This document shows, piece by piece, positions 1-7,324 of a stretch of 7,324 nucleotides of DNA. Numbering within the stretch: position 1 is the first letter of the stretch; every line of letters starts with the position of its first letter. The notes below the pieces were generated by a model. It had not been told where the DNA came from. It did no database searches and was given only the letters and a program-made list of their open reading frames with translations. The position numbers and the translations under genes were made by a program. The DNA lies in NCBI GenBank assembly GCA_048772705.1, contig JBLWGC010000124.1:1-7324 (forward strand), read 5' to 3'. The DNA comes from Leidyana gryllorum EB-2025a. Taxonomy: Eukaryota; Protista; Apicomplexa.

Positions 1-47
1 CGTAGAGCGCAAGACTTTTGAAGGGAGAACCGCGGGTTCGGGCGGCG
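1..47 (+). pseudogene. tRNA remnant, Lys(TTT)-like, cut by the window edge
   Basis: GTAGAGCG-CAAGA-CT-TTT then CCGCGGGTTCG-GGCGGCG; 3' strand of the T arm is deleted. Homologues at 3846-3909 and 7122-7186. Isotype uncertain. Confidence 0.55.
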
Positions 48-53
48 CGAGCA

Positions 54-117
54 GTCCTAGTAAAGCTTGCTGAACCGTATGTGAAGCCATTGGCCGCAAA
101 ATGCCAAGTTGGACAAC
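54..117 (+). repeat. Conserved Ser 5' flank of about 64 bp; further copies at 1394-1458, 3916-3980 and 7193-7256
   Basis: All four copies share GAACCGTATGTGA and variants of GGCCGCAAAATGCC. Confidence 0.9.
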
Positions 118-199
118 GGCAACTCGCCCGAGTGGTTAAGGGGGTAGACTAGAAATCTACTGGGCCGGGCCCGTGCTGGTTCAAATCCAGCAGTTGTCG
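118..199 (+). tRNA. tRNA-Ser(AGA)
   Basis: 82 nt; acceptor GGCAACT/AGTTGTC, G73; anticodon arm GTAGA-CT-AGA-AA-TCTAC; long variable arm; GGTTCAAATCC. Confidence 0.95.
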
Positions 200-274
200 T
201 GCGATGTGGTTGGAGGGTTAAACACCAACTCACGCTTGAATTTCTGAATGGTGGAAAAGCAACCATGTGTCATC

Positions 275-345
275 TGCATCTGCCGGGAATCGAACCCGGG
301 TCGTCTCGATGGCAACGAGACATTCTACCACTAGACCACAGATGC
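275..345 (-). tRNA. tRNA-Gly(GCC)
   Basis: 71 nt; GCATCTG/CAGATGC, A73; TCTCG-TT-GCC-AT-CGAGA; CCGGG-TTCGATT-CCCGG. Confidence 0.96.
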
Positions 346-410
346 GTGACACCTTGTTGTTGAAGCTCGTACACGGTAACGGCCGTTTTCTGAACGAATG
401 GAATGTCCGT

Positions 411-472
411 GGCGTGTTCATAGTGGTTACTATTTTCGCATGTCACGCGTAAGAAGCGGGCCGATTGCCGGT
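411..472 (+). pseudogene. tRNA-Asp(GTC) remnant
   Basis: TAGTGGTTACTATTTTCGCATGTCACGCGTAAGA aligns to Asp 782-853; 5' acceptor strand deleted and T arm decayed. Confidence 0.8.
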
Positions 473-500
473 AAATGAGTCTGGAACGGGGGATGGTTTT

Positions 501-572
501 GGGCCTATGGGGCAACGGTAGCGCGTCTGACTCCAGATCAGAAGGTTGGGTGTTCGAATCACTCTGGGCTCA
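501..572 (+). tRNA. tRNA-Trp(CCA)
   Basis: 72 nt; GGGCCTA/TGGGCTC; TCTGA-CT-CCA-GA-TCAGA; one D-stem mismatch (GGGC/GCGC). Confidence 0.9.
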
Positions 573-585
573 ACCGGACTCTATG

Positions 586-590
586 TTTTT
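586..590 (+). terminator. Candidate Pol III oligo-T terminator (T5) after Trp
   Basis: TTTTT starting 14 nt after the discriminator. Confidence 0.5.
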
Positions 591-608
591 CCCGTTTGGG
601 GCGCAGCC

Positions 609-688
609 TGACATAAGTGGGATTCGAACCCACGACCTTTCGGACTCCGGTCTGAGCACAGCGCCTCAGACCACTCGGTCATCTTGCC
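609..688 (-). tRNA. tRNA-Leu(CAG), possibly decaying
   Basis: 80 nt; CTGTG-CT-CAG-AC-CGGAG with a G:G mismatch; A5:A68 acceptor mismatch relative to Leu 6007-6086. Confidence 0.75.
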
Positions 689-781
689 GGGATGTTGTTG
701 GCTCGCCGCTCCACGCGTTTTCTATCCCTGGATCTCAAGATGGAAGGACTTTTGGGGTTTCAGGCCGGTGTGTTCGGAGCG

Positions 782-853
782 TCCGAGATAGTATAGTGGT
801 TAGTATTTCCGCCTGTCACGCGGAAGACCCGGGTTCGATTCCCGGTCTCGGAG
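782..853 (+). tRNA. tRNA-Asp(GTC)
   Basis: 72 nt; TCCGAGA/TCTCGGA, G73; TCCGC-CT-GTC-AC-GCGGA; intact A and B boxes. Confidence 0.97.
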
Positions 854-879
854 CACAGTTGATCTCGCTTAAGATTGTC

Positions 880-885
880 TTTTTT
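880..885 (+). terminator. Candidate Pol III oligo-T terminator (T6) after Asp
   Basis: TTTTTT starting 27 nt downstream of Asp. Confidence 0.5.
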
Positions 886-908
886 GGTGCCCGCTGAAAG
901 TTGCAAGC

Positions 909-981
909 TACAGCCACCGAGGATCGAACTCGGGACCTTCTGCGTGTTAAGCAGACGTCGTAACCACTAGACCATGGCTGC
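909..981 (-). tRNA. tRNA-Val(AAC)
   Basis: 73 nt; GCAGCCA/TGGCTGT, A73; TCTGC-TT-AAC-AC-GCAGA; CCGAG-TTCGATC-CTCGG. Confidence 0.95.
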
Positions 982-1041
982 ATGGATGGTCCCCGCAGCC
1001 CAAGAGAAGTGGCGAAGCTTCAGGGAGTAGTGAGGACCAGT

Positions 1042-1110
1042 TCATCGCGCCGGGATCGAACCCAGGTCGGAAATCCAAAGTGTCGAGTGCTAACCACCAA
1101 GGACGCAACC
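1042..1110 (-). pseudogene. tRNA-Gln remnant (loop reads TTG)
   Basis: Aligns to Gln 3073-3144 including both flanks; D stem, anticodon stem and 3' acceptor are disrupted. Confidence 0.85.
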
Positions 1111-1267
1111 GGTTCAGCCCATCCCAGAAGAGTCGGACTAGCGCTTCCTCAACTGGACACATGCAACACGGGTCTTGTATACAGACCCCAGCGTAAAGAG
1201 TTGGATTCGAGTCGGGCAAAAACCTCAGTTCAATCATTCAACCAGTTGCGCTCTCCCCGAATGCTAC

Positions 1268-1349
1268 CGACAAGGGTGAGATTCGAACTCACGCGGGTGG
1301 AACCCAACGGCTTAGCAGGCCGCCGCCTTAACCACTCGGCCACCTTGCC
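1268..1349 (-). tRNA. tRNA-Ser(GCT)
   Basis: 82 nt; GGCAAGG/CCTTGTC, G73; GCGGC-CT-GCT-AA-GCCGT; long variable arm. Confidence 0.95.
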
Positions 1350-1458
1350 GACGACATCTCCTACTCGCTGGCACTTTTTAACAACGGTTTGGGGTCCTAG
1401 TCAAGCTTGCCGAACCGTATGTGACATCACTGGCCGCAAAATGCCGAGTTCGACAGGT

Positions 1459-1540
1459 GGCAACTTGCCCGAGTGGTTAAGGGGGTAGACTCGAAATCTA
1501 CCGGGCCTGGCCCGCGCTGGTTCAAATCCAGCAGTTGTCG
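1459..1540 (+). tRNA. tRNA-Ser(CGA)
   Basis: 82 nt; body nearly identical to the Ser(AGA) copies; GTAGA-CT-CGA-AA-TCTAC. Confidence 0.95.
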
Positions 1541-1604
1541 TGCGATGTGGTGGAAATGATGCAATTCCCAGCATCAAAAACTCATATGGGTCGAGACAAG
1601 GAAT

Positions 1605-1676
1605 GCCTCCTTAGCTTAGGGGCAGAGCATTCGCTTTGTAAGCGAAAGGTCGCTGGTTCGATTCCGGCAGGAGGCT
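1605..1676 (+). tRNA. tRNA-Thr(TGT)
   Basis: 72 nt; GCCTCCT/AGGAGGC; TTCGC-TT-TGT-AA-GCGAA. Confidence 0.95.
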
Positions 1677-1699
1677 TCAGTCATTAGCCTAAACATGGT

Positions 1700-1759
1700 T
1701 GCGATCATCGGCCCGCATTTTCGGACGGCGGCTTGCACGCAGCACTCGGCCATCTTGCC
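1700..1759 (-). pseudogene. tRNA-Leu remnant
   Basis: Minus strand GGCAAGATGGCCGAGTG...GTCCGAAAA; internal deletion, T arm lost; lies in the same Leu-Asp cassette as 609-853. Confidence 0.8.
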
Positions 1760-1836
1760 GAAGTGTTACCCGTTTCCTGTCCGTGAAATTCAAAATGCGA
1801 GGAGTTCTGGGGTTGGAGGCCGGCGTGTTTATAGCG

Positions 1837-1908
1837 TCCGAGATAGTATAGTGATTAGTATTTCCGCCTGTCACTCGGAAGACCCGTGTTCGATTCCCGG
1901 TCTCGGAG
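1837..1908 (+). pseudogene. tRNA-Asp(GTC), full length but probably non-functional
   Basis: Three substitutions versus 782-853: D-loop GG>GA, anticodon-stem C:T and T-stem T:C mismatches. Confidence 0.75.
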
Positions 1909-1953
1909 CAGTTCCAGCCCCTCACAACTGCTGCAACTCAGGTTTTGTCTCAG

Positions 1954-2005
1954 CTGGTCTGGACTTCATCCGGCATTGTAAGAGTGGGAGCCGCATATAG
2001 AAGCC
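1954..2005 (-). pseudogene. tRNA-Glu remnant
   Basis: GGACTTCATCCGG...GTGGGAGCCGCATATAGAAGCC aligns to Glu 2407-2479; followed by a Pro remnant, same order as 2407-2632. Confidence 0.65.
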
Positions 2006-2046
2006 GACCTTGGAGAGACGTGGCATTGAGTCAACAACTATCAAAC

Positions 2047-2116
2047 GGGCTGTTCTGGGAATCGAACCCAGGACTTCTTCCACCAAAGGAAGAATACATA
2101 ACTGGACCAAACAGAG
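2047..2116 (-). pseudogene. tRNA-Pro(TGG) pseudogene
   Basis: 3' half identical to Pro 2561-2632; 6-nt anticodon loop TT-TGG-T; D-loop GG lost; 5' acceptor end altered. Confidence 0.85.
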
Positions 2117-2131
2117 CGCTGTGGGTGCGTC

Positions 2132-2204
2132 AGGTACTGGCAGGTTCCAAACCTGCGACTTCGTGGCTAAGAGACTTACACTCTGATGGCTGAGCTACGA
2201 GGCT
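2132..2204 (-). pseudogene. tRNA-Asn-derived pseudogene (loop reads CTT)
   Basis: Aligns to Asn 5686-5758; D loop, anticodon stem and TTC motif are mutated. Confidence 0.8.
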
Positions 2205-2258
2205 CAGCTACGATGATTTGAGTTGCGATAAGCTTGCAGGTACCCATTCGATGCAGTC

Positions 2259-2330
2259 AGCCTTCTGCCGGAATCGAACCGGCGACCTTTCGCTTACTAA
2301 GCGAATGCTCTGCCCCTAAGCTAAGAAGGC
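2259..2330 (-). tRNA. tRNA-Thr(AGT)
   Basis: 72 nt; GCCTTCT/AGAAGGC; TTCGC-TT-AGT-AA-GCGAA; GCCGG-TTCGATT-CCGGC. Confidence 0.96.
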
Positions 2331-2406
2331 AATGCAAGCCAAAGATCACGAATCAGTCACTATTGACGGGGATTTCTGAGGCACTTTGCTCGAATGGTTC
2401 AATGAC

Positions 2407-2479
2407 TTCCACTGCCGGGACTTGAACCCAGATCGTGCGGGTGAGAGCCGCATATCCTAGCCACTTAGACTACAGTGGA
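2407..2479 (-). tRNA. tRNA-Glu(CTC)
   Basis: 73 nt; TCCACTG/CAGTGGA; TGCGG-CT-CTC-AC-CCGCA. Confidence 0.94.
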
Positions 2480-2560
2480 CAACTTCCTCAGCTGCAGCTT
2501 TAGCCGAGAGCCGTACCCTCTTGATCTGAGATAGAGCGTCGGGTCAACCGACAAGCAACG

Positions 2561-2632
2561 GGGCTGTTCTGGGAATCGAACCCAGGACTTCTTCCACCCG
2601 AAGGAAGAATCATACCACTAGACCAAACAGCC
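2561..2632 (-). tRNA. tRNA-Pro(CGG)
   Basis: 72 nt; GGCTGTT/AACAGCC, C73; CTTCC-TT-CGG-GT-GGAAG. Confidence 0.96.
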
Positions 2633-2721
2633 GCCTGTCGGTCGTGCAACGCGGTGAGCACAGTCGCGAGAGTGGTCATACGATGTTGAGAATCAACAAA
2701 ATGCGACGGGGTCTGCACAAA

Positions 2722-2794
2722 GGGCGACTAGCTCAAATGGTAGAGCGCTCGCTTAGCATGCGAGAGGTACTGGGATCGATGCCCAGGTCGTCCA
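2722..2794 (+). tRNA. tRNA-Ala(AGC)
   Basis: 73 nt; G3:U70 identity pair; CTCGC-TT-AGC-AT-GCGAG; eukaryotic Ala-type GATCG T loop. Confidence 0.96.
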
Positions 2795-2818
2795 CACTTC
2801 GTAGTCTGCAAGTGCCGC

Positions 2819-2824
2819 TTTTTT
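2819..2824 (+). terminator. Candidate Pol III oligo-T terminator (T6) after Ala
   Basis: TTTTTT starting 25 nt downstream of Ala. Confidence 0.5.
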
Positions 2825-3072
2825 ACTACAGAGTTGAAAGCTTTCAAGTGTGCCCTTTACCCCTTGGCTAGACTCGGGCACCGCAGTATGTGTGAAGGTT
2901 GCCTCAGAGCCCGGATTTCCGAGTTTGCATTTTACAATCACACACTCTGCCGACGAAGATACCAGAGTCAGTTACAATATTTCAAAGGTCAGTAGAGAGA
3001 CGCGTGTTGCATGTGTCCAGTTGGGAACGCTAGCCCGGATGATTCTACCGACTCTTTTGGATGGGCTGAACC

Positions 3073-3144
3073 GGTTGCGTGGTGTAGTGGTTAGCACTGG
3101 AGACTCTGAATCTCCCGACCTGGGTTCGATTCCCGGCGCGACCT
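3073..3144 (+). tRNA. tRNA-Gln(CTG)
   Basis: 72 nt; GGTTGCG/CGCGACC, U73; GGAGA-CT-CTG-AA-TCTCC. Confidence 0.95.
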
Positions 3145-3195
3145 TGGAACTGGTCCTCACTACTCCCTGAAACTTCGCCATCTCTTGCCATTCGT

Positions 3196-3222
3196 GCAGC
3201 CACGATCTAGTGGTCTCGACGT
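3196..3222 (+). pseudogene. tRNA-Val 5' fragment
   Basis: GCAGCCACGATCTAGTGGTCTCGACGT versus Val GCAGCCATGGTCTAGTGGTTACGACGT, in the syntenic position after Gln. Confidence 0.75.
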
Positions 3223-3286
3223 ACACGACCGTTTTACTTCAAATGAGAAGATAGAATCGAGTTGAGCGAGTGTGAGGGGCAGTTCT

Positions 3287-3358
3287 GGGTACGTAGCTCA
3301 GTGGTAGAGCAGCTGACTGCAGATCAGCAGGCTCGTGGTTCAACTCCGCGCGTGCCCT
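3287..3358 (+). tRNA. tRNA-Cys(GCA)
   Basis: 72 nt; GGGTACG/CGTGCCC, U73; GCTGA-CT-GCA-GA-TCAGC. Confidence 0.94.
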
Positions 3359-3427
3359 GGAGATGGGCTAAAACGCTCGAAGTTGTTGGTCCAACATTCC
3401 TGACCACAATGCAATGAGTCTGGACCG

Positions 3428-3490
3428 GGGCCTATGGCGGAACGTAGCGGGTCTGACTGCAGCTTAGAAAATTGGGGGTTCGAATCACTC
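3428..3490 (+). pseudogene. tRNA-Trp-derived pseudogene (loop reads GCA)
   Basis: Aligns to Trp 501-572 and shares the upstream AATGAGTCTGGA; 3' acceptor strand lost. Confidence 0.85.
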
Positions 3491-3527
3491 AATTTGATCT
3501 CATGATCTTCCCGTATGGGGGGCAACC

Positions 3528-3588
3528 TGAGAAGAGTGGGATTCGGGCCGACGCCCTTCCCGTACTGCGCCGTCTACAGCTTCTTGCC
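3528..3588 (-). pseudogene. tRNA-Leu remnant
   Basis: TGAGAAGAGTGGGATTCG...TCTTGCC aligns to both ends of Leu; D arm deleted; syntenic with Trp-Leu 501-688. Confidence 0.8.
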
Positions 3589-3671
3589 AGTGTCTGAATG
3601 GCTCTGTGATGTTTGATTCTAACTCAGGGGGATCCAGCATCCGGGTCGGTGCCATCTGTCGTCGCAGAAGT

Positions 3672-3745
3672 GGTCGCGTAGCTCAGTCGGTTAGAGCGTG
3701 AGCCTAATAAGCTCAAGGTCCCCGGTTCGAGCCCGGGCGTGACCA
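3672..3745 (+). tRNA. tRNA-Ile(AAT)
   Basis: 74 nt; GGTCGCG/CGTGACC, A73; TGAGC-CT-AAT-AA-GCTCA. Confidence 0.96.
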
Positions 3746-3845
3746 AGTGAGTAGATCTCTGATAAATAGTTGTCCTGGACCCGATGAAGCCTCAACATTC
3801 TGCGACCAATACGAAAGGAACTAGTTACTAAGTCCGAGCTTCCTT

Positions 3846-3909
3846 GCCGCTCCAGCTCCGTCGGTAGACCCCTAAATTTCTAATGGAGAGACCGCAGCTT
3901 CGGGCAGCG
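3846..3909 (+). pseudogene. tRNA remnant, Lys-like
   Basis: GCCGCTC-CAGCTCCGTCGGTAGA (A-box-like) ... CTTCG-GGCAGCG; same T-arm deletion as 1-47. Confidence 0.55.
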
Positions 3910-3980
3910 CCAGCAGTCCGAGTCAAGCTTGCTGAACCGTATGTGAAGCCACAGGGCGCAAGATGCCAAGTCCGACAGGT

Positions 3981-4062
3981 GGCAACTTGCCCGAGTGGTT
4001 AAGGGGGTAGACTAGAAATCTACTGGGCCTGGCCCGCGCTGGTTCAAATCCAGCAGTTGTCG
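3981..4062 (+). tRNA. tRNA-Ser(AGA)
   Basis: 82 nt; GTAGA-CT-AGA-AA-TCTAC; stems intact. Confidence 0.96.
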
Positions 4063-4144
4063 TGCGATCTGATTGGAGGGACAGACAACAACTCACTCCT
4101 GAAACCCCAGAATGGTGCCTCAATCAACCATCTGCCATCTTCTC

Positions 4145-4215
4145 TGCATCTGCCGGGAATCGAACCTGGGTCGTCTCGGTGACAACGACACAGTCTACCA
4201 CTAAACCACAGATGC
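4145..4215 (-). pseudogene. tRNA-Gly body with GTC (Asp) anticodon, probably decaying
   Basis: Paralogue of Gly 275-345 with flanks; TGTCG-TT-GTC-AC-CGAGA with a G:G mismatch; T-stem A:C mismatch. Confidence 0.8.
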
Positions 4216-4339
4216 GTGACATCTCCATTCCTGAATACAAAGCGAAGGGTCTTAAAACTAGTCCAGGCCGTCCAACTTAGGCCGATACATAAAAACCAGG
4301 CTCATCGGATACGTGGTTCCAGAGACACACGCTCTTTTC

Positions 4340-4417
4340 GCAGTCCGGAAGCTATCTAGTGGTCACGACGTCTGTTTAACACGCAGAAGGTCCCGAGTTC
4401 CATCCTCGGTGGCTGTA
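4340..4417 (+). pseudogene. tRNA-Val(AAC) pseudogene
   Basis: 3' two-thirds match Val 909-981; 5' acceptor/D strand disrupted by an insertion; T loop TTCC rather than TTCG. Confidence 0.85.
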
Positions 4418-4469
4418 ACACGCATCGTTCAGGTGAGCATCACGAAATCTAGAGAGGAAGACGATCTAT

Positions 4470-4541
4470 CTCCGAGACCGGAAATCGAACCCGGGTCTTC
4501 CGCGTGACAGGCGGAAATGCTAACCACTATACTATCTCGGA
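4470..4541 (-). tRNA. tRNA-Asp(GTC), two substitutions
   Basis: 72 nt; differs from 782-853 by a D-stem T>C and C61>T in the B box. Confidence 0.82.
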
Positions 4542-4632
4542 CGCTCTGAACACGCCGGCCTCCAATCCCAGAAGTCTTTCTATTTTGGCTCACGGACAAA
4601 AAACGCATGGAGCGATGAACCAACAACACTGT

Positions 4633-4694
4633 GGCAAGATGGCCGAGATGTCTGAGGCGCTGTGCTCAGACCGCAGTCCGAAAGGGCGAGGATC
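4633..4694 (+). pseudogene. tRNA-Leu(CAG), 3'-truncated
   Basis: GGCAAGATGGCCGAG...CTGTG-CT-CAG-AC-CGCAG-TCCGAAAGGGCG; D-loop GG lost; no T loop or 3' acceptor. Confidence 0.85.
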
Positions 4695-4733
4695 TCGGGT
4701 TGAGCCTTTCGGACCCCCGGAGCAGTTGGACGG

Positions 4734-4813
4734 CCGGGGGTTGCTCAGTTGGTAGAGCATCTGACTGTAGTGCTGGCATCAGATAGTCGGCGGTTCGATT
4801 CCGTCCCACCGGA
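4734..4813 (+). tRNA. tRNA-Tyr(GTA) with a 7-nt intron at 4771-4777
   Basis: C1:G72, A73; TCTGA-CT-GTA-G-[TGCTGGC]-A-TCAGA; 73 nt after splicing; one acceptor G:A mismatch and T at position 9. Confidence 0.85.
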
Positions 4814-4895
4814 AGTAGAGTGGTGATTGGCAAAGTACTAGACAGCGTTGATAGGCCAACCAGACTACTCTGGCGAGGGTTCCATCTATGTAGTT

Positions 4896-4967
4896 CGGAT
4901 GGGCTGAGAATCGATCCCGGAACCTTTCGCATACCAAGCACCGTTTCATCATCTGGGCTAGCCTCCC
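4896..4967 (-). pseudogene. tRNA-Ala remnant
   Basis: Minus strand GGGAGGCTAGCCCAGATG...ATGCGAAAGGTTCCGGGATCGAT...TCC; divergent from Pro, as in 2561-2794. Confidence 0.75.
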
Positions 4968-5056
4968 TCTGTGCCTACCTCATGGCATTGAGTGATACTC
5001 CACATAGTGAGACGAGTCTCTCGACTGTACCCAGCGGGTTGAACCACCGGCTAGGC

Positions 5057-5128
5057 GGCTGTTTGGTCTAGTGGTATGATCCTTCCTTAGGGTGGAAGGA
5101 GTCCTGGGTTCGATTCCCAGAACAGCCC
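5057..5128 (+). tRNA. tRNA-Pro(AGG)
   Basis: 72 nt; GGCTGTT/AACAGCC; CTTCC-TT-AGG-GT-GGAAG. Confidence 0.95.
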
Positions 5129-5262
5129 TCTTAAATGTCGGTTGACCCGATGGGATAAGCAGGTTTTAGAAGTAACACAGCCACCTCGTTACCACTTCGG
5201 CACTCAAGGCAATTAACATCTCAAAAATCGCATTTCGGCTCCCTCTTCCATGGTGCAGACTG

Positions 5263-5334
5263 AGCAGTGTAGCTCAGTGGAAGAGTGTTGGGCTCATAAC
5301 CCAAAGGTCCGTCGATCGAAACGACGCACTGCTA
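5263..5334 (+). tRNA. Initiator tRNA-Met(CAT)
   Basis: A1:U72; three consecutive G:C pairs in the anticodon stem (TTGGG-CT-CAT-AA-CCCAA); A54/A60 (GATCGAAA). Confidence 0.96.
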
Positions 5335-5383
5335 AGTGTGCGCAGGAGGGAAACAGTTACAGAATTGACTGGGTCGTGAGCAA

Positions 5384-5447
5384 AGCCTTCTGCCGGAATC
5401 GAGCCGGCGCTTACGAAGCGAACGCTCTGCCCCTAAGCTTAGAAGGC
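5384..5447 (-). pseudogene. tRNA-Thr(CGT) pseudogene with an 8-nt deletion
   Basis: 64 nt; lacks ACCTTTCG relative to Thr 2259-2330, removing the 3' anticodon stem and variable loop. Confidence 0.9.
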
Positions 5448-5497
5448 AATGTAAGTCGGAGATAACATGGAGCACTTTGCTCGAGTACTTCAATGAC

Positions 5498-5570
5498 TTC
5501 CACTGCCGGGACTTGAACCCGGATCGTGCGGGTGAGAGCCGCATATCCTAGCCACTTAGACTACAGTGGA
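5498..5570 (-). tRNA. tRNA-Glu(CTC)
   Basis: 73 nt; one difference from 2407-2479; stems intact. Confidence 0.96.
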
Positions 5571-5685
5571 CAACTCCCTCAGCCGCAGCTTTAGCCGAGA
5601 GCCGTACCCTCTTGACAAGACGTGGTTGCAATCCTGCGGTACAAAAAGGAGGATGTCTATACTAACCTGTGAACCATTGTAGCTG

Positions 5686-5758
5686 GGCCTTGTAGCTCAG
5701 TCGGCAGAGCGTGTGGCTGTTAACCACAAAGTCGCAGGTTCGAAACCCGCCAGGACCG
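5686..5758 (+). tRNA. tRNA-Asn(GTT)
   Basis: 73 nt; TGTGG-CT-GTT-AA-CCACA; G73; C3:A70 and one T-stem A:C mismatch. Confidence 0.85.
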
Positions 5759-5802
5759 GTTTCAGAGGCACACTAAACACTGACTGCGCTGCTCTCCCAA
5801 TG

Positions 5803-5860
5803 GCACTTGTGGTCTGCGACTCTTCAAAGATGTAAGTTTGTTTGGATCCCGCCACGTGCA
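5803..5860 (+). pseudogene. tRNA-Gly(CCC)-type remnant
   Basis: 5' GCACTTGTGGTC and 3' TCCCGCCACGTGCA-GCCG match the ends of Gly 6461-6531; interior is lost. Confidence 0.7.
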
Positions 5861-5873
5861 GCCGTATGTACTT

Positions 5874-5946
5874 TGGACGACCTCGGTATCGATCCCAGTA
5901 CCTCTCGCATGCGAAGCGAGCGCACTACCATCTGAGCTAGCCGCCC
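5874..5946 (-). tRNA. tRNA-Ala(CGC)
   Basis: 73 nt; G3:U70; CTCGC-TT-CGC-AT-GCGAG; one D-stem and one T-stem mismatch. Confidence 0.85.
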
Positions 5947-6006
5947 ATGCGCTCTACATGGAAGACCTATTGCATCCAGTGGCTGACCGAGGGCCGATAA
6001 AACGGC

Positions 6007-6086
6007 TGACAAGAGTGGGATTCGAACCCACGCCCTTTCGGACTGCGGCCTTAACACAGCGCCTTGGACCACTCGGCCATCTTGCC
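6007..6086 (-). tRNA. tRNA-Leu(AAG)
   Basis: 80 nt; GGCAAGA/TCTTGTC, A73; CTGTG-TT-AAG-GC-CGCAG; T4 on the minus strand at 5999-6002. Confidence 0.96.
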
Positions 6087-6159
6087 GGAGTGTTCTTGGC
6101 TCGCCACTTTACACGTTTTCTGTTCGTGAAGTCTCGAGAAGAAAGGCTTTTCTCACGGG

Positions 6160-6236
6160 CCGGGGTGCTTAGATGGCAACCCATCTGATGGTAGTGGTGG
6201 CATCAGCTATTCGACGAGGAAATTCCGTCCGCCGGG
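6160..6236 (+). pseudogene. tRNA-Tyr pseudogene retaining the 7-nt intron (6195-6201)
   Basis: CATCTGATGGTAG-TGGTGGC-ATCAG aligns to Tyr 4734-4813; D and T loops destroyed. Confidence 0.8.
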
Positions 6237-6313
6237 AGTTGAGGAGTGGACTTCTTACAACGCATTCCATCCTGATCGATGCTTCGCTACCTCTACAGCC
6301 TCGCTCAAAGATT

Positions 6314-6385
6314 GTCCGAGTCGTCTAGTGGTTAGGACAGCACGTTGTGGCCGTGCAAACCCAGGCTCGATTCCTGGCTCGGACA
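6314..6385 (+). tRNA. tRNA-His(GTG)
   Basis: 72 nt; GTCCGAG/CTCGGAC, A73; GCACG-TT-GTG-GC-CGTGC; C at position 54; no encoded G-1. Confidence 0.9.
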
Positions 6386-6460
6386 AGCAGTCTAAAGTGC
6401 ATTGCTCTTCGCCCCGGTTGAAAATATTGTTGCAGCCATGGTCAAGCCTGTACGATCGGC

Positions 6461-6531
6461 TGCACCTGCCGGGACTCGAACCCGGGCTGCTCGCATGGGA
6501 AGCTCGCATCCTACCCTTGGACCACAAGTGC
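6461..6531 (-). tRNA. tRNA-Gly(CCC) with a defective anticodon stem
   Basis: 71 nt; GCACTTG/CAGGTGC, A73; CGAGC-TT-CCC-AT-GCGAG has two purine mismatches. Confidence 0.75.
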
Positions 6532-6596
6532 ACTCGAGAAAGAGCTCCAGCACCCCGAGACTCGGCCGCAGTCTGCGTTGAGCTAGTGGGTGCCTC

Positions 6597-6668
6597 AAGT
6601 ACTGGCAGGTTCCAGTCTGCGACTTTGTGGCTAAGAGACTTACCCTCTGGTGGCTGAACTACGAGGCT
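6597..6668 (-). pseudogene. tRNA-Asn-derived pseudogene
   Basis: Sister of 2132-2204 with shared lesions (GTAAGTCTCTTAGCCAC on the minus strand). Confidence 0.8.
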
Positions 6669-6729
6669 CGGCTAAGATGATTGGAGCTTGAGAGACTTAA
6701 GCTTTGCAGGTGCCCAGTCGATGTAGTCA

Positions 6730-6801
6730 AGCCTTCTGCCGGAATCGAACCGGCGACTTCTCGATTACGAAGCGAACGCTCTGCCCCTAAACTAAGAAGG
6801 C
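6730..6801 (-). tRNA. tRNA-Thr(CGT)
   Basis: 72 nt; TTCGC-TT-CGT-AA-TCGAG with a C31:T39 mismatch; acceptor and T stems intact. Confidence 0.82.
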
Positions 6802-6877
6802 AATGGAAGCCGGAGATGACGAAACAATCGCTATTGACGGAGATTAGTGGAGCACTTTGCTAGAGTAGTTCAATGAC

Positions 6878-6950
6878 TTCCACTGCCGGGACTTGAACCC
6901 GGATCGTGGGGGTGAAAGCCGCATATCCTAGCCACTTAGACTACAGTGGA
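6878..6950 (-). tRNA. tRNA-Glu(TTC)
   Basis: 73 nt; two differences from Glu 5498-5570: wobble base and a C:C anticodon-stem mismatch. Confidence 0.85.
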
Positions 6951-7121
6951 CGAGTGGTTGAGTTGGGGCTTCGGCCGAGAGCCGTACAGTCTTGGAAAAC
7001 ATGGTATGTCGGCGTGATCAAGTGAGGTGGATCTCTGATACAGATTCGGACTTAGTAACCAATTCCATTTGTATTGATCGTGGAATCTTGGGCCTTCCTC
7101 GGGTACGGGGCGAGCTTTCTT

Positions 7122-7186
7122 GCCGCCCCAACTCCTTTCCTTTGCGCGCAAGACTTTTGAAGGGAGATCCGCGGGTTTGGGCGGCG
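7122..7186 (+). pseudogene. tRNA remnant, Lys-like
   Basis: GCCGCCC...GCGCAAGACTTTTGAAGGGAGA...GGCGGCG; closely similar to 1-47. Confidence 0.5.
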
Positions 7187-7256
7187 CGAGCAGTCCTAGT
7201 AAAGCTCGCTGAACCGTATGTGAAGCCACTGGCCGCAAAATGCCAAGTTCGACAGC

Positions 7257-7324
7257 GGCAACTTGCCCGAGTGATTAAGGGTTAGACTTGAAATCTATTG
7301 GGTCTGGCCCGCGGTGGTTCGAAT
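7257..7324 (+). tRNA. tRNA-Ser(TGA), cut by the window end, possibly decaying
   Basis: Same body and upstream flank as the other Ser(NGA) genes; TAGA-CT-TGA-AA-TCTA; D-loop GG>GA and a 1-nt deletion. Confidence 0.75.

Follow-up and report, generated by a model that had tools for sequence, protein, structure and literature searches.

Positions 1 to 7,324 of contig JBLWGC010000124.1, hereafter the window, hold a dense, scrambled array of transfer RNA (tRNA) genes and remnants. We regard it as probably a nuclear multi-family tRNA island of a unicellular eukaryote, with fast birth-and-death turnover and relaxed, distal RNA polymerase III (Pol III) termination. ARAGORN finds 31 tRNA genes on both strands, with 26 anticodons for 17 amino acids (4.2 genes per kb), and Rfam RF00005 gives 32 matches at or above the gathering threshold. 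A scan with a library made of the tRNA genes of the window and of L001, a related array described below, yields 20 matches to remnants, two of which are halves of one Leu, against 0–1 weak matches in the control (20 shuffles of the spacer DNA); alignments reveal two more, a Gly-CCC remnant (5803–5860) and an Ile tail near 7011–7021. The total is about 50 tRNA-derived loci in 7.3 kb, or about 7 per kb: 18 clean genes, 13 lesioned genes and about 20 remnants. Clean genes are those in which an audit of stems and invariant bases found no stem mismatch and no changed invariant base; a flag on Gly-GCC was discounted, as it recurs in both L001 copies. The 18 genes that pass carry their internal A and B box bases inside an intact cloverleaf.

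Affinities of the array

An initial annotation of the window counted about 32 full-length genes and about 20 remnants; these numbers hold, but no more than 18 of the 31 genes lack lesions. It also described a dedicated locus with most of a decoding set, which holds only in part: 13 amino acids have a clean gene, no gene for Arg, Phe or elongator Met occurs in the window, and Lys is present as a remnant only. Its other statements on content were recovered: 17 amino acids on both strands; an array touching both window edges (a Lys-like remnant from base 2, a Ser gene cut at 7324); no fixed unit of gene order, since Tandem Repeats Finder reports no tandem unit in the window, only a 13-nt doublet; and no protein gene. 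Eight of the longer open reading frames (ORFs) have no Pfam match (ORF 475–897 lay outside the tested set), which led us to reject protein coding, and other RNA families were rejected as well, the Rfam matches below gathering being overlaps with tRNAs. GC content is flat, at 52–56% throughout and 54% overall.

Judged from their sequences, the genes are of the eukaryotic nuclear type, because they include A34 anticodons and an intron-bearing Tyr. The Thr and Asp patterns have no match in GTDB genomes, and five tRNA patterns have none in viral contigs. The Asp, Gly and Ala bodies may be apicomplexan-like, and the host is probably an alveolate or apicomplexan; the window has no marker gene for placing it. 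The gregarine Gregarina niphandrodes has 231 tRNAs and 53.8% GC (PMC9250747), which hints at gregarines. A sequence search of published papers gave no match to the window tRNA sequences. Runs in the Sequence Read Archive (SRA) share 5–10% of the window words; they come from metagenomes of the phyllosphere, of air and of moss and from coded organisms, and the sharing probably reflects conserved gene bodies.

A pattern derived from the unusual Thr D-arm led to L001, the soil-type JGI metagenome contig Ga0114129_10037694. Within 6.8 kb (6.3 genes per kb) this contig has 43 tRNA genes, which serve all 20 amino acids; they lie on both strands with scrambled isotypes, in long co-directional runs and with almost no remnants. 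The median gap is 56 nt, and the spacing over 1–6824 is regular: 52–61 nt between head-to-tail neighbors, 76–78 nt between divergent ones and 28–39 nt between convergent ones. L001 looks like a pristine, near-minimal Pol III lattice, differing from the window by its complete amino acid set, regular spacers, terminators (39 of 43 genes) and old isoacceptors. Only gene bodies, of a lineage-specific kind common to both, align between the two (Thr 98.6%, Gly 97%, Leu 96%, Asp 92%): no spacer is common to both, and a shared gene order was rejected (4 common adjacencies against 2.2 expected, P = 0.16). With this one relative as its basis, the comparison indicates that dense mixed arrays either are older than the split of the two, which is more likely, or evolved independently in two closely related organisms; they seem to be a trait of the lineage. 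For the initial annotation, an architecture already described as the norm of its lineage would be a refutation, and this holds in part: the distant relative L001 is indeed equally dense and mixed, but our literature search, of incomplete coverage, found no description of such arrays in gregarines, apicomplexans or dinoflagellates.

Comparison with known systems places the window as follows. (i) Multi-family tRNA islands are the class into which it falls, at a far higher density. Islands, for which the threshold is 5 genes per 5 kb, are known from Chlamydomonas and metazoans and likewise bring many isotype families close together, in variable orientation and without a tandem unit; unlike them, the window packs about 50 loci, 31 of them genes, into 7.3 kb, in a protist, and shows diverged recurrent cassettes, dense remnants and missing terminators, features undescribed for islands (PMC13578239). 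Islands are also said to have no evident repeat motif, and the window combines the lack of a tandem unit with recurring diverged cassettes of two or three genes. In the small sample of protists and fungi of that study, singletons are nearly exclusive. (ii) Entamoeba arrays also mass protist nuclear tRNA genes of mixed isotypes without protein genes, and their units fuse and split between species; nearly all tRNA genes of such a genome are in arrays, which probably sit at chromosome ends. The arrays consist, however, of uniform tandem units of 1–5 genes with AT-rich spacers and, in two species, short tandem repeats (STRs) (PMC2652664). We rejected an array of this type, as the window has no uniform head-to-tail unit or tandem period, no AT-rich STR spacers, and diverged, dispersed copies (75–92% identity) with pseudogenes. 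(iii) Trypanosomatid Pol III clusters share with the window mixed isotypes on either strand and short spacers, and show weak synteny between species, but comprise 2–10 tRNA genes, set between protein-coding units, with a T run 0–7 nt after every gene (PMC2695483), a rule that L001 follows and the window does not; about 50 loci and no protein gene argue against a cluster of this kind. (iv) Prokaryotic tRNA array units have at least 20 genes at at least 2 per kb, as the window does, but are 98% co-oriented (PMC4758250); random orientation, eukaryotic-type genes and the absence of the Thr and Asp patterns from GTDB genomes led us to reject this alternative. Mixed tRNA islands have precedents, but none is known from a protist with a density of about 7 loci per kb.

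Turnover of cassettes and gene bodies

Self-comparison of the window reveals blocks of 130–410 nt with 75–92% identity, direct and inverted, that cover genes and spacers alike; those of 230–410 nt, at 77–85%, occur in both orientations. Eleven oriented adjacencies recur, with 13 repeats against 1.4 expected by chance: Glu–Thr and Leu–Asp occur three times each, and Lys–Ser, Ser–Gly, Trp–Leu, Asp–Val, Gln–Val, Pro–Ala and others twice each, with spacers 75–92% alike within the recurrent cassettes. Examples are (i) the Lys–Ser–Gly cassette, 21–354 and 3882–4224 (85% identity); (ii) the Glu–Thr–Asn cassette, 2121–2523 and 6586–6994 (410 nt at 85%); (iii) the Trp–Leu pair, which recurs in decayed form at 3428–3578; and (iv) the 782–1110 region, with inverted copies at 4355–4691 and 2998–3222 in which Val and Gln are reciprocally lost. 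Segments of 100–400 nt, i.e. one to three genes with their spacers, have thus been copied within the array, often in inverted orientation, after which one copy often decays, sometimes reciprocally between copies: in one inverted pair the survivors are Val 909 and Gln 3073, in another Asn 5686 and Gly-CCC 6461. The duplicated block 3741–4049/7016–7324 has an internal inversion of 60 bp. Strand order is random, with 26 strand switches among 50 loci and 23 of 49 neighbors co-directional, versus 34 of 42 in L001 (p = 0.001). The recurrence of two- and three-gene cassettes with their spacers, and the duplication, inversion and decay proposed in the initial annotation, are borne out by these data. 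A CpG-decay signature was rejected (observed/expected CpG ratio of 0.9).

The scrambled order might be an assembly artefact in which dispersed loci were joined via near-identical tRNA bodies, and no sequencing run indeed has more than 10% of the window words. We consider this very improbable. No spacer is longer than about 310 nt and each has tRNA loci on both sides, and mis-joins cannot produce such density because each short spacer links two tRNA loci; moreover, the duplicates are only 75–92% identical, i.e. not collapsed copies, one has an internal inversion, and an independent assembly, that of L001, has the same kind of array.

The ancestral array may have resembled L001, a regular, terminator-bearing lattice with spacers of about 56 nt. 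Tightly packed Pol III genes could then have acted as fork-stalling and recombination hot spots driving the turnover; tDNA clusters have been described as unstable regions, and fork stalling has been discussed in this context (PMC2888827; see also PMC2652664).

Surviving gene bodies are far more conserved than their spacers. Across the duplicated blocks, gene–gene columns differ by 5.7% with 0 indels and spacer columns by 17.6% with 31 indels; therefore, selection or conversion acts on the bodies. As this comparison is partly circular, we ran a neutral simulation: of genes that are clean at the start, only 10%, 3% and 1% remain so when substitution per branch is 6%, 9% and 12%, respectively. 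Individual pairs give the same picture: both Pro genes of the inverted block 2539–2804/4886–5150 are clean, with spacers 24.6% apart, and only three of their 72 sites are different, namely the wobble base and the two bases of a compensatory pair; Ser 1459 and Ser 3981 are both clean, with spacers 15.3% apart; both Glu-CTC genes are clean, with spacers 11.6% apart.

Anticodon position 34 differs between flank-sharing copies in six families (Ser, Pro, Thr, Glu, Leu and Ala), and the only change at position 35 lies in a decayed copy. In the window, isoacceptors within the Ser, Pro and Glu families are 2–3 nt apart, versus 8–16 nt for the same pairs in L001, and hence are regenerated from sister copies by position-34 changes. 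Such anticodon shift is a known process (PMC3923123). Gene birth, anticodon switching and death are all visible in one 7-kb stretch.

Missing terminators and expression

The absence of proximal terminators is the sharpest anomaly of the array. A run of four T (T4) lies within 10 nt downstream of 1 of the 31 genes, which is the chance level for the window (0.9), versus 39 of 43 in L001 (p = 3e-15). Runs of at least five T are as frequent as in shuffled DNA (10 versus 10.0), unlike in L001 (66 versus 28). Among the 18 clean genes, seven have a T4 within 50 nt, where chance predicts 2.3 (p = 0.005, in one of six tests made post hoc); in four the T4 comes at 87–272 nt, and the remaining seven lack one over 400 nt. 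The canonical type-2 Pol III unit is thus represented by its A and B boxes in 18 genes and lacks its T4 just after the gene. Flank-sharing clean copies are both without proximal T runs; therefore, the loss is old and tolerated. Another terminator or upstream motif was rejected, as 15 non-redundant flanks gave no consensus.

Human tDNAs offer a partial parallel. In human, 50–60% of the tRNA genes have a T4 within 15 bp and most others have degenerate T-rich signals; in yeast, more than 97% have a terminator within 15 bp. Human tDNAs with distant terminators can be transcribed and yield pre-tRNAs with long trailers (PMC3141230). The window differs from the human case, since a single one of its 18 clean genes has a T4 within 10 nt and degenerate signals show no surplus.

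If the array is functional, its clean genes would be expressed by Pol III from the A and B boxes that lie within them, and termination would come late, at a T4 15–45 nt away for 7 of 18 genes or else hundreds of nucleotides away; this is the weakest step of the proposed mechanism. The products would be long-trailer, partly polycistronic precursors. The Pro–Glu–Thr trio (2632–2259) is a candidate for such a precursor, because the next T4 on the minus strand lies at 1795, up to which it might be read. RNase P and RNase Z, the enzymes that mature tRNA precursors, would excise the tRNAs from long-trailer and polycistronic transcripts alike. Release might be helped by structure or by a helicase of the Sen1 type, Sen1 being a fail-safe termination factor (PMC9278858). 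A bolder proposal, which we advance tentatively, is that the organism has largely dropped proximal oligo-T termination across its tRNA repertoire, with long or polycistronic precursors or a T-independent stop, the relative having kept its terminators.

Several points weigh against these views of turnover and termination. In yeast, T-tracts are necessary for termination (PMC9278858); non-canonical, degenerate terminators such as those in human show no enrichment in the window flanks; and none of the SRA runs sharing window words is recorded as RNA. The Thr D-arm pattern matched one contig only in the JGI metagenomes, so that L001 is a single relative. In the divergence test, intact genes were set by the same structure criteria, and columns are not independent, as the duplicated blocks overlap. 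Finally, gene conversion from master genes elsewhere could keep the bodies pristine.

This last point leads to a rival explanation: the window could be a mostly silent archive, an L001-like array that was amplified, lost its terminators and is decaying, with conversion from a few expressed, terminator-bearing masters repolishing the bodies only. Such conversion, confined to the homologous body, would mimic selection, about 33 of the 50 or so loci are lesioned or remnants, and T runs are at the shuffle level, unlike in L001. The wobble switches in six families, with the single position-35 change in a decayed copy, and the compensatory pair between the Pro copies fit selection on tRNA function instead, and we hold a silent archive to be unlikely. 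Less likely still is that the arrays are mainly chromosome-structural DNA (platforms for TFIIIC or condensin, telomere- or centromere-like) with tRNA output secondary. High density without protein genes would suit this role, terminator loss would be irrelevant to factor binding, and a telomeric role has been proposed for Entamoeba arrays (PMC2652664); yet whole cloverleaves are conserved, including acceptor and anticodon stems, not just the A and B boxes.

The window, shuffled and unterminated, has its matching counterpart in L001, ordered and terminated, and the pair makes testable why tRNA genes cluster and whether the oligo-T tract is indispensable for Pol III termination. If proximal oligo-T termination has been abandoned, the pair would be nature's own test of a rule regarded as general among eukaryotes; a lineage-wide tRNA array architecture of this kind would be undescribed.

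Map of the window

The loci, with their strands, are the following.

From 2, plus: Lys-like remnant, start of the cassette repeated at 3854–4215
118–199, plus: Ser-AGA, U8 changed to C
275–345, minus: Gly-GCC, clean, 97% identical to L001
420–472, plus: Asp remnant (library scan)
501–572, plus: Trp-CCA, one D-stem mismatch
609–688, minus: Leu-CAG, several lesions
782–853, plus: Asp-GTC, clean, facing Val-AAC
909–981, minus: Val-AAC, clean
1045–1110, minus: Gln remnant
1268–1349, minus: Ser-GCT, clean
1459–1540, plus: Ser-CGA, clean
1605–1676, plus: Thr-TGT, clean, compensatory acceptor pair relative to Thr-AGT
1714–2203, mixed: decayed tract with a Leu remnant (minus), a lesioned Asp (1837–1908, plus), then Glu, Pro-TGG and Asn remnants (minus); 28–79 bits
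2259–2632, minus: Pro-CGG, Glu-CTC and Thr-AGT trio, clean, co-directional; Thr-AGT identical to L001 Thr at 71 of 72 positions
2722–2794, plus: Ala-AGC, clean, T6 run 24 nt downstream
From 2920, minus: Asn remnant, in stretch 2920–3222 (inverted partner of 955–1175)
3073–3144, plus: Gln-CTG, clean
To 3222, plus: Val 5' fragment, end of the same stretch
3287–3358, plus: Cys-GCA, clean, no T4 in 400 nt; Trp and Leu remnants lie between it and Ile-AAT
3672–3745, plus: Ile-AAT, clean, no T4 in 400 nt
3741 on: Ile 3' flank, with the 60-bp segment (3779–3837) inverted in its copy
Between Ile 3' flank and Ser-AGA 3981: Lys-like remnant, in stretch 3741–4224
3981–4062, plus: Ser-AGA, clean
4145–4215, minus: decayed Gly with GTC anticodon, three stem lesions
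From 4355: Val remnant, in stretch 4355–4813
4470–4541, minus: lesioned Asp
Between Asp 4470–4541 and Tyr: Leu remnant
4734–4813, plus: Tyr-GTA, 7-nt intron (ARAGORN), acceptor-stem mismatch
From 4897, minus: Ala remnant
5057–5128, plus: Pro-AGG, clean
5263–5334, plus: initiator Met, clean
From 5384, minus: Thr-CGT, 8-nt deletion, following Glu-CTC 5498–5570
5498–5570, minus: Glu-CTC, clean, second Glu–Thr cassette copy
From 5686, plus: Asn-GTT, two stem mismatches
5803–5860, plus: Gly-CCC remnant (alignment); 5686–5860 is the inverted partner of 6458–6682
From 5874, minus: Ala-CGC, lesioned
6007–6086, minus: Leu-AAG, the only clean gene with a T4 within 10 nt
6162–6237, plus: Tyr remnant, decayed sister of Tyr 4734–4813
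From 6314, plus: His-GTG, C in place of T54, convergent with Gly-CCC
About 6458–6532, minus: Gly-CCC, two anticodon-stem mismatches
6599–6950, minus: Glu-TTC, Thr-CGT and Asn remnant, third Glu–Thr–Asn cassette, Glu and Thr each with an anticodon-stem lesion
Near 7011–7021, plus: Ile 3' tail
7046–7104: the 60-bp segment, inverted
To 7324, plus: Lys-like remnant, then Ser gene cut by the edge, in blocks with 3835–4049 and 7–186

The locus at 4145–4215, Asp by its anticodon, is a decayed copy of Gly-GCC; recruitment of a Gly gene to Asp was rejected, as the three stem lesions suggest a pseudogene. The mismatches of Gly-CCC (6458–6532) resemble a 2-nt micro-inversion, by which the strands of the anticodon stem become identical instead of complementary. 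The Tyr-GTA intron is unusually short, as is that of the L001 Tyr (9 nt). The 60-nt upstream flank of Ser occurs in four copies (54–117, 1394–1458, 3916–3980 and 7193–7257), in which positions −60 to −31 are kept at 25–29 of 30, better than the downstream flank; the boundaries of the duplications, or else an upstream element, may account for this. In L001, a minisatellite-like repeat (5390–5690) with sub-units of 33–55 nt and a 98-nt block at 99% fills the only large tRNA-free gap, and related single copies of it are found at about 4833 and 5917.

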